A stretch of 64,000 nt of DNA from Podarcis bocagei (taxonomy: Eukaryota), in the NCBI GenBank assembly GCA_964188305.1, contig OZ076886.1, one strand, 5' to 3'. How positions within the stretch are numbered: position 1 is the first letter of the stretch; each line of letters starts with the position of its first letter. The position numbers and the translations under genes were made by a program. Under the pieces are notes generated by a model. That model ran no database searches. It worked only from the letters and a program-made list of their open reading frames with translations, and was not told the origin of the DNA. This document shows positions 33,462 through 60,331 of the stretch, piece by piece.

Positions 33462-33594
33462 ATGGAAGGAAAGGGGCCTTATCGTATCTATGACCCGGGT
33501 GGGGGAACGGAAAAGGGAGCATCTGCTGCCTTTGAACGGCTGATGGAGGAAAATACCCGGCTGAAGGAGAAGATGCAGGGAATTAAGTCTCTAG
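33462..33594 (+). CDS. TNIP1: TNIP1 exon 2, first coding exon (MEGKGPYRIYDPGGG...GIKSL-G); exon begins at 33424
   Basis: Near-identical to the vertebrate TNIP1 N-terminus (MEGRGPYRIYDPGG...ENSRLKEKMQGIKMLG). Acceptor tttcag at 33423, donor G|GTAACG, phase 1. Confidence 0.97.
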
Positions 33595-55356: not shown

Positions 55357-55485
55357 GCCTTAGAAGAGGCCCTGAACGTTCAAGCCTCTGCTCCTTCCCC
55401 TTCGGCCTTCAACAGCCCCATTGAACCTGGAGCATCGGTCCGGCATCAGGAGGTGGTGACCCAGAATGAGCTCCTAAAGCAACAG
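55357..55485 (+). CDS. TNIP1: TNIP1 exon 13 (ALEEALNVQASAPSPSAFNSP...QEVVTQNELLKQQ), N-terminal part of UBAN
   Basis: Conserved ALEEAL and VTQNELLKQQ. Boundaries tctcag| and |gtatgg, 129 nt. Confidence 0.97.
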
Positions 55486-55599: not shown

Positions 55600-55678
55600 A
55601 AGCTGGGGCAACCCAGTCAGATGGGCAGGGTACAATGTTGTTGTTGTTGTTGTTGTTGCTGCTGCTGCTGTTGTTGTT
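55600..55678 (+). repeat. L2 3' terminus with (GTT)n(GCT)n microsatellite tail
   Basis: gctggggcaacccagtcagatgggcagggtaca followed by the triplet array. Confidence 0.7.
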
Positions 55679-55819
55679 AACGTCTTTGAAGTTGGGCTCA
55701 AAACACGGTTGTGCCCATTGCCTTTTCCTGACATCAGTGTTGGGACACTTGGCGCTTGCCTTACATTGGGATTGTATCTCTGTGAACCAAGGACTTCACT
55801 GCCTCTTGTTCCCTGCCAG

Positions 55820-55945
55820 GTGAAGATTTTTGAGGAGGACTTTCAGCGGGAGCGGAGCGACAGAGAAAGGATGAACGAGGAGAAGGAGGAGCTGAAGCAG
55901 CAGCTGGATAAGCTTCAGAAGCAGTTGGTGCTCACCAACAGCCAG
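55820..55945 (+). CDS. TNIP1: TNIP1 exon 14, UBAN core (VKIFEEDFQRERSDRERMNEEKEELKQQLDKLQKQLVLTNSQ)
   Basis: Canonical UBAN DFxxER motif, with the ubiquitin-binding Asp codon at 55838-55840. Boundaries tgccag| and |gtagga, 126 nt. Confidence 0.98.
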
Positions 55946-57009
55946 GTAGGAACCCAGAAAGCACATTCTGGTTTCAAAAAGGAAGCTGTGCAATGAAGGG
56001 GATGACAATTAGGCCACTCTGAAATCCCAGTCTGCTGACTGATCCAGCTGCCCTGTGCTTTCCAAAATCCAAAAGACTGCTACATAGCCTTTCTATCCAC
56101 CATTAGTTTCATCTCCCATGTTCCCTCCCCCCACATCAGTGTCCTTTTTGGGCACTTCCACTTCTCTCTCCCCCCTGTCTTTATCAGCCTGCTTCCCGTT
56201 GCCTTCTCCTAGGCCTAGCCGTGATCTTCAGGGGATCTCTTCTATATCCTGCATTGCTGCACTAAGACTGTCCGCCTTCTCCCAGAGGGTAGCCAGGAGA
56301 ACAAAGAGGCAAAATCTCACAAAGCGAAGGCATCTTCTGGAAGTTCTTCAGAATCGGGATGCAGTTCACAAGCCACAGTTCAGTCACTTCACTCCTATAT
56401 CAGGGCTGGGGAACCTGTGGCCCTCCAGGTGTTGCTGAGCCACAGCACCCATCATCCCTACCCATTGATCATGCTGGCAGGGGCTGATGGGAGTCCAGCG
56501 GTGTCATGGAGAGCCACAGGTTCCCCATCCCTGCTCCACAGGTTGCTCACATCTGCTGCCTGTTTTATCCTTAAGGGAAAAGAGATAATTGTGTCATTTG
56601 TTTTGGAAGGAGAGGGGGAAGAGGCATACCAGTAAGCAAAGACAAGGTGTGTTCAAGTAAGATTGGGTAGTTGCTCCCTCAGCCAGAAGTGGTTCTTGCT
56701 GTCTAGCATGTCCGTCGAAATCTAGTATGGCCTCTTACTTCCCTCAGTCATGTGACCTCACTGGACCTTTGTAAGAGTAAGCTGGGGCAACCTCTCCTTA
56801 TATCCACGCAGAGGCTTAGAGCCAAAGAACTGTGTTATGTGCTGCCTTTTGTGCTTCACGAGGGCACCCAGATTTGGAGGGAGCTCAGCAGCTCTAGCAG
56901 ATTTGAGCAGAATGTTTGCATTTAATTTGCCTGGCCTCCTTCCCAACGTGCAGTTGACAGGGAATCCTTTAGCTCCCCGCTTACCTGTGGCCTTCTCTCT
57001 CCCTGCCAG

Positions 57010-57090
57010 ATGCAGATTTTTAAAGAGGACTATCGTAAAGAGAAGGAAGAGAAGGACAAGTTCAAGAAGCTGCTGAAGCAGCACAAACAG
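57010..57090 (+). CDS. TNIP1: TNIP1 exon 15 (MQIFKEDYRKEKEEKDKFKKLLKQHKQ)
   Basis: Strong pyrimidine tract plus ccctgccag|, donor CAG|GTACAG, 81 nt, phase 0-0. Occupies the position of the short charged exon that follows UBAN in human. Confidence 0.9.
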
Positions 57091-57182: not shown

Positions 57183-58337
57183 GTGGACTGTTCAGAGGAG
57201 CTGGGAGCTGGGGGCACTGTTATACAGTGGTTCTACTCCTTTCTCCTGGGCTGTGTTCAGAAAGTGGTGTTGGGGGATGAGTGTTCAGACCCCTGGGCTC
57301 TCACTTGTGGGGTGCCTCAGGGTTCCGTCCTCTCCCCCATGCTTTTTAATATCTATATGAAGCCGCTAGAAGAGATCATTGGGGTTTGGGCTGGTGTTCA
57401 TCAGTATGCGGATAATACCCAGCTCTACCTCTCTTTTAAATTAGAACCAGTGCAGGCGGTGAATGTCCTGTGTGAGTGCCTGGAGGTGGTTGGAGGATGG
57501 ATGGTGGCTAACAGATTGTGGTTGAATCCTGAAAAGACAGAAGTACTGTTTTGGGGGGACAGGGGGCGGGCGGGTGTGGGGGACTCCCTGGTCTTGAATG
57601 GGGTAACTGTGCCCCTGAAGGACCAGGTGCGTAGCCTGGGAGTCATTTTGGACTCACAGGTGTCCATGGAGGCACAGGTTAATTCTGTGTCCAGGGCGGC
57701 TGTCTACCAGCTCCATCTGGTACGCAGGCTGAGACTCTACCTGCCCACAGACTGTCTCATCAGAGTGGTGCATGCTCTAGTTATCTCCCGCTTGAACTAC
57801 TGCAATTCGCTCTACGTGGGGCTACCTTTGAAGGTGACCCGGAAACTGCAATTAATCCAGAATGCGGCAGCTAGACTGGTGACTGGGAGTGGTCGCCGGG
57901 ACCATTTAACACCGGTCCTGAGAGATCTGCATTGGCTCCCAGTACGTTTCCGAGCACAATTCAAAGGGTTGATGCTGACCTTTAAAGTCCTAAATGGCCT
58001 CGGTCCTGTATACCTGAAGGAGCATCTCCACCCCCATTGTTCAGCCCGGACACTGAGATCCAGCGCCAAGGGCCTTCTGGCGGTTCCCTCATTGCAAGAA
58101 GTGAGGTTACAGGGAACCAGACAGAGGGCCTGTCAGTAGTTGTGCCCGCCCTGTGGAACACCCTCCCATCAGATGTCAAGGAAATATGCAGCTATCCTAT
58201 TTTTAAAAGACATATGAAGGCAGCCCTGTTTAGGGAAGTTTTTAATATTTAATGCTGAATTGTTTTTAACACTCGATTGGGAGCTGCCCAGAGTGGCTGG
58301 GGAAACTCAGCCAGATGGGCGGGGTATAAATAATAAA
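57183..58337 (+). mobile_element. 5'-truncated L2 LINE (RT domain and C-terminus), sense orientation in intron 15
   Basis: GVPQGSVLSPMLFNIYM, YADN (catalytic YADD mutated), LNPEKTE, SRLNYCNSL...LQLIQNAAARL and LHWLPV are L2-clade hallmarks. Frameshift near 58130. Confidence 0.95.
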
Positions 58338-58415
58338 TTCTTCTTCTTCTTCTTCTTCTTCTTCTTCTTCTTCTTCTTCTTCTTCTTCTTCTTCTTCTTC
58401 TTCTTCTTCTTCTTC
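58338..58415. repeat. (TTC)26 microsatellite forming the L2 tail
   Basis: Direct reading. Confidence 0.98.
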
Positions 58416-59028
58416 ACCCCACTTTGACATGTGGCTCAGATTCCAATCACTTGTATAATTTTTTGGTAGCTTCCTTAGGGCCAGTTCGTACTAGGGATCA
58501 ATGAATGAATCGGGTCACTTTTGCATGTGTTCACCTACAAGTCCATTCTGTCCCAAATTAATCTGAATAACCAACTTGGATGACCTAAAAAGAGAATTAG
58601 ACAAATTCATGGAGAGCAAAGCTTTCAGTGGCTACCAGCCACAATGGCTATGCTCTGCTTTCATGGTTGGAAGCAGTAATGTTTCCAGTTTCTGGGAACT
58701 GCCAGAGGGGAGACCGCTCTTGTGTTGGGGTCCTGCTCACTGGTTTCCAACAAGCATTGGGTTGGCCACTGTGAGAGCAGGATGCTGGACCAGATGGCCA
58801 AGTGGCCTCTTCTTATGATATTCTCTTTGCCATGACGCACCCATAAATTATTTCCATACATTGTGGATGTTTTCCAGTCAAATTGAACCCTAATTGGGCG
58901 AAAGGTGTGAAACTTCTAGCCCCAAACTGGATATTACCTATTTTTTTACATAATAATGTGTTTTTCTTTCAGGGAAAGCAACCAATTACCAATGCCATTG
59001 TGGCTGATAATTTTACCAGGGTCCTACG

Positions 59029-59103
59029 TCTCTCTCTCTCTCACACACACACACAGAGAGAGGGAGGGAGGGAGGGAGGGAGGGAGGAGGGGAGGGAGAG
59101 AGA
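59029..59103. repeat. Compound (CT)n(CA)n(GA)n(GGGA)n microsatellite
   Basis: Direct reading. Confidence 0.9.
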
Positions 59104-59562: not shown

Positions 59563-59760
59563 CATTCTGGTGACAGGCTTCATCCAGAGCCACAGCCAGG
59601 ACCGGGGGCCCCAGTCTGCCCCATGTACCAGTTCCAGTGCCCCACTCCAGTCCAGCCCCACATGTATCTTGGTTATGAGGAGTGGCAGCAGATCCGTTAC
59701 CCACCAGCGGCAATGCCAAATGAGCGTCCTCCGGTTCAGAACTACCACCGATTCCCTCCT
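59563..59760 (+). CDS. TNIP1: TNIP1 exon 16, proline-rich (HSGDRLHPEPQP...YEEWQQIRYPPAAMPNERPP...RFPP)
   Basis: Matches human SGERYHVEPHP...FEDWSQIRYPPPPM. Boundaries ttacag| and |gtgagt, 198 nt. Confidence 0.94.
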
Positions 59761-60240: not shown

Positions 60241-60331
60241 CCTGAATATACCTGGTATCCACCATGTGTTATTTCACAAAGTCAGAACGCACAAGCGCCA
60301 GATGGTGGGAAACAACTCCCCAAGGAATCAG
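60241..60331 (+). CDS. TNIP1: TNIP1 exon 17 (PEYTWYPPCVISQSQNAQAPDGGKQLPKES)
   Basis: Matches human PEYTWRLPC. Boundaries ctttag| and G|gtaaga, 91 nt, phase 0-1. Confidence 0.92.

Follow-up and report, generated by a model that had tools for sequence, protein, structure and literature searches.

The 64,000 nucleotide (nt) stretch of Podarcis bocagei DNA analyzed in the current work (GenBank assembly GCA_964188305.1, contig OZ076886.1), referred to below as the window, contains on its + strand the TNIP1 gene, which encodes ABIN-1. A tblastn search performed with four TNIP1 proteins located collinear TNIP1 exons from position 33462 to position 60327 on this strand, and the full TNIP1 architecture (TNIP1_N, coiled coils, AHD1, UBAN and a proline-rich tail) is encoded collinearly within the window; TNIP1 orthologues contain the Pfam domains PF27887 (TNIP1_N) and PF16516 (CC2-LZ). 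Attention is focused here on exon 15, the exon directly 3' to the UBAN exon, whose first codons specify a second, UBAN-like core that is very likely the degenerate product of an ancient tandem duplication.

The exon numbers 13, 14 and 15 used below are those of the exon count of a first-pass annotation of this DNA, and all features are located on the + strand. Exon 13 (55357..55485), which precedes the UBAN exon and ends in ...NELLKQQ, is delimited by the RNA sequencing (RNA-seq) joints 55170/55357 and 55485/55820 and by tblastn with TNIP1 orthologues. Exon 14 (55820..55945; 126 nt, 42 codons, phase 0-0; peptide VKIFEEDFQRERSDRERMNEEKEELKQQLDKLQKQLVLTNSQ) encodes the canonical UBAN, as is evident from RNA joints, from its similarity to the PDB TNIP1 chains 6n6r, 6n5m, 7eao and 7eal (E-values of 5e-16 to 8e-15) and to the NEMO and optineurin UBANs in PDB (E-value of ~1e-3), and from a Pfam CC2-LZ (PF16516) score of 38.6 bits, above the cut-off of 35.3. 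The first 18 of these codons (55820..55873; VKIFEEDFQRERSDRERM) represent the UBAN core, designated repeat unit 1, which is invariant in 65 unique orthologue sequences and corresponds to columns 1-18 of the hhalign alignment described below. The GT..AG intron between exons 14 and 15 (55946..57009) is 1064 nt long, a 1064-nt RNA joint being present in four of four runs, and is followed by exon 15 (57010..57090; 81 nt, 27 codons, phase 0-0; peptide MQIFKEDYRKEKEEKDKFKKLLKQHKQ), which is delimited by RNA joints and by annotated Podarcis TNIP1. The first 18 codons of exon 15 (57010..57063; MQIFKEDYRKEKEEKDKF), located 42 residues after unit 1, constitute the second UBAN-like core, or repeat unit 2, as recognized by BLOSUM62 scoring and hhalign. 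Both exons are preceded by a Q codon, and the exon 14 and exon 15 peptides are identical to those of the annotated TNIP1 of Podarcis muralis, P. raffonei and P. lilfordi. The next exon (59563..59760; HSGDRLHPEP...), delimited by joints 57090/59563 and 59760/60241, encodes the proline-rich tail, by which point the predicted helix is already over.

The RNA-seq evidence, in the form of reads and contigs, stems from a closely related organism and comprises four runs, two of which are raw-read runs. In these two, joint 55485/55820 was covered by 42-62 reads, joint 55945/57010 by 63-78 reads and joint 57090/59563 by 91-92 reads, and no joint skipping from exon 14 to exon 16 was found in any of the four runs. 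Because the flanking joints are present and the skipping joint is absent, exon 15 is a genuine in-frame exon that is included constitutively in the RNA samples examined. Elsewhere, the 81-nt phase-0 exon 15 acts as a cassette in some squamates and rays, since the annotated isoforms P0211 (Tiliqua X4), P0221 (Rhineura X5), P0128 (Pristis X2) and P0107 run from the UBAN exon directly to an exon past exon 15.

At the protein level, exon 15 opens with 17-18 residues that match those of the UBAN core of exon 14 without any shift in register, with unit 1 (V-K-I-F-E-E-D-F-Q-R-E-R-S-D-R-E-R-M) corresponding position by position to unit 2 (L/M-R/Q-I-F/Y-K/Q-E-D-Y/F-Q-K-E-K-E-E-K-D/E-K-L/F). When the first 17 residues of each exon were compared by ungapped BLOSUM62 scoring, unit 2 of Podarcis scored 45 against unit 1, and scores of 35-53 were obtained in sharks, other sauropsids and amphibians, while the mammalian exon 15 remained at background level. 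None of the ~580 other windows per protein equalled the unit-2 score (the best of these reaching 13-32), nor did any of 20,000 composition-preserving shuffles. Profiles built from 60 unique exon-15 and 65 unique exon-14 sequences were aligned by hhalign over columns 1-18 to 1-18 with a score of 28.8 and a probability of 93%, a score reached by none of 200 column shuffles (mean 9.4, standard deviation 2.1, maximum 16.2). Translation and hhalign thereby bear out the 42- and 27-codon exons and the in-register second motif of the first-pass annotation.

The CC2-LZ profile was then applied to 67-residue segments starting past the UBAN core, the Pfam cut-off being 35.3 bits. Exon 15 lands on profile positions ~62-80, as does exon 14, and CC2-LZ was the top family for the post-core segments of shark TNIP1 (22.2 bits, E-value of 2e-4; 21.4 bits), chimaera TNIP3 (20.5 bits) and the tegu Salvator (17.0 bits), with shark TNIP3-like scoring 15.6 bits; as controls, ten natural coiled-coil segments taken from these proteins returned no CC2-LZ match. 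Motif 2 alone from three lineages, searched against PDB with phmmer, retrieved four sequences each, 3-4 of which were TNIP1 UBAN chains in register, although with E-values of 1.3-9.4 none of these is significant singly.

At the nucleotide level, the last 10 intron bases before exon 14 (55810..55819) and before exon 15 (57000..57009) are identical (TCCCTGCCAG), this 10-mer occurring at these two sites only on both strands of the window, and the two exons agree at 20 of their first 25 bases, a recount that returned the very figures of the first-pass annotation. Repeat detection independently reported a 35-nt pair (55810-55844 / 57000-57034) of 86% identity, and comparison of the flanks further upstream and downstream showed the similarity to end at the last 10 intron nt. 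Identity of the intron ends is 10/10 in Podarcis and Lacerta, 7/10 in Rhineura, 5/10 in Tiliqua and in Candoia, 2/10 in Anolis, 8/10 in Terrapene and 6/10 in the shark Chiloscyllium, and that of the exon starts, in the same order, is 20, 20, 18, 16, 16, 19, 16 and 17 of 25. The acceptor before exon 14 is near-identical in Lacerta, Rhineura and Terrapene, and that before exon 15 has two differences from the version of other squamates, being two substitutions to C within the pyrimidine tract when compared with Rhineura. Judged from these alignments, the 10/10 intron identity is a coincidence of splice-site consensus and two lacertid substitutions, and it cannot be a relic because the duplication is so old; the exon identity of 16-20/25 is found in 8/8 species, in keeping with the I-F-x-E-D codons common to both exons. 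Gene conversion or a recent duplication as the source of the 10 intron bases was rejected on comparison with the loci of the seven other species, and the shared intron bases, given in the first-pass annotation as evidence of duplication or conversion, lose that role, the identity being complete in lacertids only and 2-8 of 10 elsewhere. A second, weaker exon-exon match of 71% (55865-55902 vs 57046-57083) is offset by 9 nt from the first. This match, together with tblastn alignments containing a 7-residue gap, suggests that all of exon 15 may derive from exon 14 minus about one heptad, a derivation not distinguishable from low-complexity similarity.

The distribution of the motif was determined from the exon after the UBAN exon in named orthologues, the comparisons covering TNIP1 and TNIP3 of jawed vertebrates. 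In TNIP1 this exon reads LRIYQEDYQKEKLEKEKIQRLLKHQKQ in sharks, the motif of shark and ray TNIP1 being LRIYQEDYQKEK, and ..VYQEDFQKEK.. in the ray Mobula. Squamates have LRIFKEDY[QHR]KEKEEKDK[FL]KKLLKQHKQ, with D-F in Salvator and Pogona, and the tuatara has LRVFKDDYQKEK... The exon reads LR[LI][FS]KDD[YC]QREK.. in turtles, LRLCKDDCQREK.. in crocodilians, LR[AVI]SKDDCQREK.. in birds, LRACKEDNQREK.. in caecilians, LRAFMEDLRHEK.. in the axolotl, LHQTQSECQRERAER.. in ray-finned fishes and LKAFKDEEKAKEALKQQKRKAK in mammals. The TNIP3-like gene of sharks and rays carries LKTYEEDF[IL]KERKEKDLLGKKLKKQ, a copy (LKTYEEDFIKERKEKD; LKTYEEDF[IL]KERKEKD) that is clearer than that of TNIP1, is located in its own phase-0 exon and is nearly invariant in 15 shark and ray species. 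In cartilaginous fishes, near-invariance of the motif extends to both paralogues. Birds, crocodilians, amphibians and ray-finned fishes carry an eroded version of it. Tetrapod TNIP3 holds a short degenerate remnant of 17-18 residues (IKSCQMEKEKLEKQLKQ in mammals, VKDCQEERELLEKKVKQQ in Zootoca), which is absent in many Neoaves, several neoavian TNIP3 models being entirely without it. In the mammalian TNIP1 exon 15, an 8-residue gap in the MAFFT alignment lies exactly over D-[YF]-x-x-E-[KR]-x-x (columns ~127-134; rows P0038 and P0039), which suggests that an in-frame 8-residue deletion took the second core out in the mammalian lineage. The statement in the first-pass annotation that the human exon lacks the pattern agrees with the mammalian representatives, from which it is missing. 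The idea that retention is special to lizards does not hold, considering that sharks, rays, tuatara and turtles hold the motif as well or better, and its expectation of IFxEDYxxEK in other sauropsids was borne out for turtles and tuatara, and failed for birds and crocodilians.

With regard to the age of the motif, the TNIP3-like gene of the shark Hemiscyllium consists in this region of a 126-nt phase-0 UBAN exon, a 122-nt intron and a 75-nt phase-0 exon, at the first codon of which the second motif starts; lizard, turtle and shark TNIP1 have the same exon layout. In a maximum-likelihood tree based on the region through UBAN1, with motif 2 excluded, all TNIP1 sequences including shark TNIP1 form one clade (support 80/93), and shark TNIP3-like falls outside this clade beside tetrapod TNIP3, the basal branching being unresolved. 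The motif occurs in TNIP1 and TNIP3-like with the same exon layout, and TNIP3-like branches apart from the clade of TNIP1 sequences; both motif 2 and the exon boundary at which it starts therefore predate the TNIP1/TNIP3 split, and the motif is at least as old as the common ancestor of shark and lizard. Exon 15 very likely encodes a tandem copy, old and degenerate, of the ~18 residues with which the UBAN exon opens. The two exons are neighbours of the same phase, with an above-chance similarity that begins at the exon boundary; tandem exon duplication is, on these grounds, the most economical inference. Similarity of the flanking introns, expected only of a recent duplication, is confined to the last 10 nt in lacertids, which fits an ancient event. 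The old exon duplication or conversion retained in lizards that the first-pass annotation had put forward consequently stands as an old duplication, without the conversion and without the restriction to lizards. In the full-text literature, of which coverage was incomplete, neither a second, tandem or UBAN-like motif in ABINs nor a TNIP1 exon duplication was found.

An AlphaFold2 monomer model of residues 385-533 of P0202, generated from a 36-sequence alignment, consists of a single unbroken helix from residue 436 to residue 527, ending 4 residues past exon 15, with predicted local distance difference test (pLDDT) values of 96-98 through UBAN and exon 15. The 42 codons of exon 14 place exactly 6 heptads between the two cores, and coiled-coil geometry amounts to ~1.48 Å per residue. 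If the helix dimerises in parallel, motif 2 would therefore be located on the same face as the UBAN and ~62 Å C-terminal to it, a distance estimated to be about the length of one more ubiquitin pair; the solved UBANs of ABIN-1, NEMO and OPTN are parallel coiled coils (10.1101/521815). Published ubiquitin contacts include the UBAN Asp, which is the residue changed in the D485N (mouse) and D472N (human) mutants, and the acidic residue before it (E484), and UBAN contacts including the Glu of DFxxER meet Arg72, Arg74 and Arg42 of the distal ubiquitin, which binds the UBAN by its hydrophobic Ile44 surface (10.1101/521815; PMC11940065; PMC3173241). A UBAN is recognized by its binding of M1- or K63-linked di-ubiquitin, abolished by an Asp-to-Asn change (PMC11940065; PMC3173241; 10.1101/521815). 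E/D-D, E-[KR] and a residue of aromatic or hydrophobic character are preserved in motif 2, so that the acidic, Asp and Glu contacts named above are all retained. When Podarcis I-F-K-E-D-Y-R-K-E-K-E-E-K-D is compared to the pattern [IV]-[FY]-x-x-D-F-x-x-E-R-x-x-R-E, D and E are kept; the changes are F to Y, R to K at two positions and the final E to D, the correspondence of the last K-D being uncertain. Exact E-R and exact D-F, the Phe of which we take from the NEMO literature to be the UBAN residue meeting the Ile44 surface, are present in motif 2 of shark TNIP3-like.

A number of results weigh against a working second UBAN in exon 15, and some of them qualify the alignment and the profile evidence. 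The post-core segment of Podarcis itself scored 12.2 bits against CC2-LZ (E-value of 0.26), those of the turtle Pelusios, Gallus and a mammal returned no match, and every motif-2 score falls below the 35.3-bit Pfam gathering threshold. Exon 15 alone returned no UBAN match in Pfam or PDB, single-sequence queries of this kind being very short and hence not decisive. When a hidden Markov model (HMM) was built from TNIP exon-14 sequences alone, its second-best match fell at +42 in fewer cases than at +35 or ~98 residues upstream, with those at +35 coming mainly from birds and lying in the E/K-rich part; this HMM was deemed too narrow and was not used as support. Past residue 12 (exon 15 residues 13-27), opening a gap of one heptad gives the same score as aligning without a gap, and because of this tie it is uncertain that K15-D16 represents the R-E pair of the UBAN. 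Moreover, variability was assessed in 60 unique exon-15 sequences, drawn from all sampled vertebrate groups and pre-filtered for E-[KR] at positions 11-12. It is greatest at positions 3, 4 and 8, whose counterparts I, F and F are invariant in UBAN1. Tyr8 has changed to Cys among close relatives (Zootoca vs Lacerta and Podarcis; Rhineura; Vipera vs Candoia and Liasis; Terrapene and Chelonia vs Platysternon and Pelusios), Phe4 to Leu, Ile or Val in Elgaria, Pogona, Phrynosoma and Vipera, and every Arg of ERxxRE is Lys in motif 2. The most conserved part of exon 15 is its charged and Leu-rich C-terminal half. At position 8, 57 of the 60 sequences have C, Y, F or L and 2 others have N, and the five commonest residues are uncharged, a residue profile that suggests some remaining constraint. 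Taken together, motif 2 is very likely UBAN-derived, yet it is not a UBAN domain by the Pfam threshold; on the profile HMM comparison proposed in the first-pass annotation, it exceeds natural coiled-coil controls and remains short of the family cut-off.

Several explanations of the likeness between the two exons have to be weighed. That it arose recently, by exon duplication or gene conversion in the lizard lineage, is what the window by itself would invite one to believe, considering the complete intron identity, the 20 of 25 shared exon bases, the uniqueness of the 10-mer and the use of the same codons for I, F, E and D in both exons. The motif is already present in sharks, however, the intron identity does not extend beyond Podarcis and Lacerta, two changes towards C in a pyrimidine tract account for the acceptor, and an exon identity of similar extent is seen in every species including the shark, with dissimilar flanks; a recent origin is refuted for the motif as a whole and is given hardly any credence. 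A short lacertid-specific conversion tract of ~12 nt, although conceivable, is not needed to explain the intron identity. A chance or convergent likeness of two E/K/R-rich coiled-coil segments would be in keeping with the compositional bias of both exons, with the non-significant database-wide E-values of single sequences (1.3-9) and with the comparable weak matches of the TNIP-only HMM elsewhere in the coiled coil. It is largely refuted, and very improbable, given that neither residue nor column shuffles nor any other window of the same proteins reached the score, and that the match begins at both exon starts, in adjacent same-phase exons, and in two paralogues.

The explanations that accept an ancient duplicate differ in what the second core does at present. 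If it were a functional second UBAN in lizards, sharks and turtles, a TNIP1 dimer would read at least four linked ubiquitins, with an effect on chain-length selectivity. Six signature positions are indeed conservatively kept (D, aromatic, E, basic, basic, acidic), in exact register on a helix predicted to be continuous, and the motif has been conserved for >400 million years in sharks, lepidosaurs and turtles, with the restricted residue profile at position 8 and an exact D-F in Salvator, Pogona, Mobula and shark TNIP3-like. These observations are offset by the sub-threshold profile scores, by the replacement of Tyr by Cys and of Phe by Leu, Val or Ile among close relatives and of Arg by Lys throughout, and by ABIN-1 crystal constructs that include the mammalian exon 15 and show ubiquitin at UBAN1 only (10.1101/521815), although mammals are without the core; full function is accordingly regarded as rather unlikely. 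Alternatively, exon 15 may be kept purely as a coiled-coil extension or for another partner, the UBAN-like residues being fossil, a reading to which we assign somewhat less than an even chance. It accords with the finding that the charged and Leu-rich stretch E11-K12-E-E-K-D-K-[LF]-KKLLKQHKQ, rather than the aromatic positions, is most conserved, and that mammals, birds and teleosts keep an exon here without the motif. The NEMO-binding domain (NBD) is placed after the UBAN in reviews, and the mammalian stretch falls within the region mapped as this domain (PMC11854354). A pure vestige nevertheless does not account for the near-perfect EEDFxKER of shark TNIP3-like, nor for the fact that many lineages strictly keep E/D-D and a hydrophobic residue at position 8.

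The explanation we favour, and consider probable for lizards, is an ancient duplicated UBAN core that now represents a conserved, charged extension of the coiled coil, any ubiquitin binding by which would be auxiliary and weak at most. According to this proposal, an internal tandem duplication, probably of the exon, took place before TNIP1 and TNIP3 separated, in the gnathostome ancestor or earlier. The lizard exon 15 would then serve mainly as a conserved and highly charged extension of the UBAN coiled coil, retaining the acidic-Asp-aromatic-x-x-Glu-basic skeleton of the ubiquitin contact patch, and may by avidity lend weak auxiliary binding to a further ubiquitin pair on a long M1-linked chain. 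It would not amount to a second full UBAN, considering the Arg to Lys and Phe to Tyr changes and the loosely constrained exposed aromatic positions. Real ubiquitin binding by the lizard motif 2 is, judged in this way, improbable, and would be less so for that of sharks; because the motif is nearly invariant in both paralogues, a working second site would most likely be found in cartilaginous fishes, in TNIP1 and TNIP3-like. A bolder scenario, to which we give little weight, is that ancestral jawed-vertebrate ABINs were bivalent, a dimer with two UBAN cores six heptads apart clamping at least four M1-linked ubiquitins; that sharks (TNIP1 and TNIP3-like), lepidosaurs and turtles still use the second site, which mammals deleted and which splicing of the 81-nt cassette can switch off; and that ABIN-1 chain-length selectivity, and hence the tuning of NF-kB and cell-death signalling, differs between mammals and other vertebrates.

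When compared to known systems, motif 2 resembles the UBAN (CC2-LZ, PF16516) of ABIN-1/2/3, NEMO and optineurin in its hydrophobic-aromatic-x-acidic-Asp-aromatic-x-x-Glu-basic helix and in its alignment to the UBAN-core profile positions in the heptad register of the canonical site. It differs in its sub-threshold score, in Tyr for Phe and Lys for each Arg, in its variable aromatics, and in presenting ~18 recognisable residues of a ~40-residue UBAN/LZ unit. The mammalian TNIP1 exon after the UBAN (LKAFKDEEKAREALRQQKRKAK, in the NEMO-binding domain region) is orthologous by position, phase and an L-K/R-x-F-K-D/E start, yet is without the D-[YF]-x-x-E-[KR] core of the lizard exon 15. Multivalent ubiquitin reading from UBAN-type coiled coils is also represented by CEP55 (NOA and ZF; PMC6817665), by NEMO and OPTN (UBAN and UBZ) and by P0077, in which modules are of differing type or irregular spacing, whereas lizard TNIP1 carries same-type cores six heptads apart on one helix. 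P0077, an invertebrate-like protein of 344 amino acids, contains the UBAN-like repeats ..NDFKQERSDRE.., ..NDFKQGNVETE.. and ..EEDFKQERCDRER.., followed by a UBZ-type zinc finger, and because of these three repeats tandem multiplication of the UBAN core has therefore occurred outside vertebrate ABINs also.

ABIN-1 has a central role in restraining NF-kB and cell-death signalling, and mutation of its single UBAN Asp reportedly suffices to cause lupus-like disease in mice. To our knowledge, its structural and biochemical studies have all been performed with the mammalian protein, which is without the second core. If an in-register second patch is present in non-mammalian ABIN-1, this would constitute a natural experiment on UBAN valency and on the reading of chain length and linkage, and would explain the origin of the poorly understood mammalian post-UBAN stretch. 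If the motif is a fossil only, it still documents growth of the UBAN coiled coil by internal duplication, and provides a dated exon duplicate that has decayed independently in several lineages.

With respect to the RNA samples, a synonymous G>C change at 57075 (CTG>CTC) is the sole difference between RNA and window inside exons 14 and 15, and further fixed differences in the RNA reads were observed at 55416, 55437, 59592, 59606, 59669 and 60281; these fixed single-base differences fit RNA from a sister species or population rather than from the assembled individual. The intron after exon 15 contains at 57200-58500 an interspersed repeat with very deep RNA read and contig cover on both strands and many variant positions, which looks like a transposable-element fragment. 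The peptide encoded by part of this repeat (57957-58109) recurs as a fusion in a reptile TNIP1 model that was mis-predicted (P0025). A 27-nt inverted repeat in the intron that separates exons 14 and 15 (56401-56427 / 56507-56533; 93% complementary, 79 nt apart), associated with a few RNA reads with strand-switch joints, is probably a repeat-element hairpin. Intronic microsatellites comprise a perfect (TTC)26 at 58338-58415, (TGT)14 grading into GCT at 55636-55678, and (GAGG)12 at 59056-59102.

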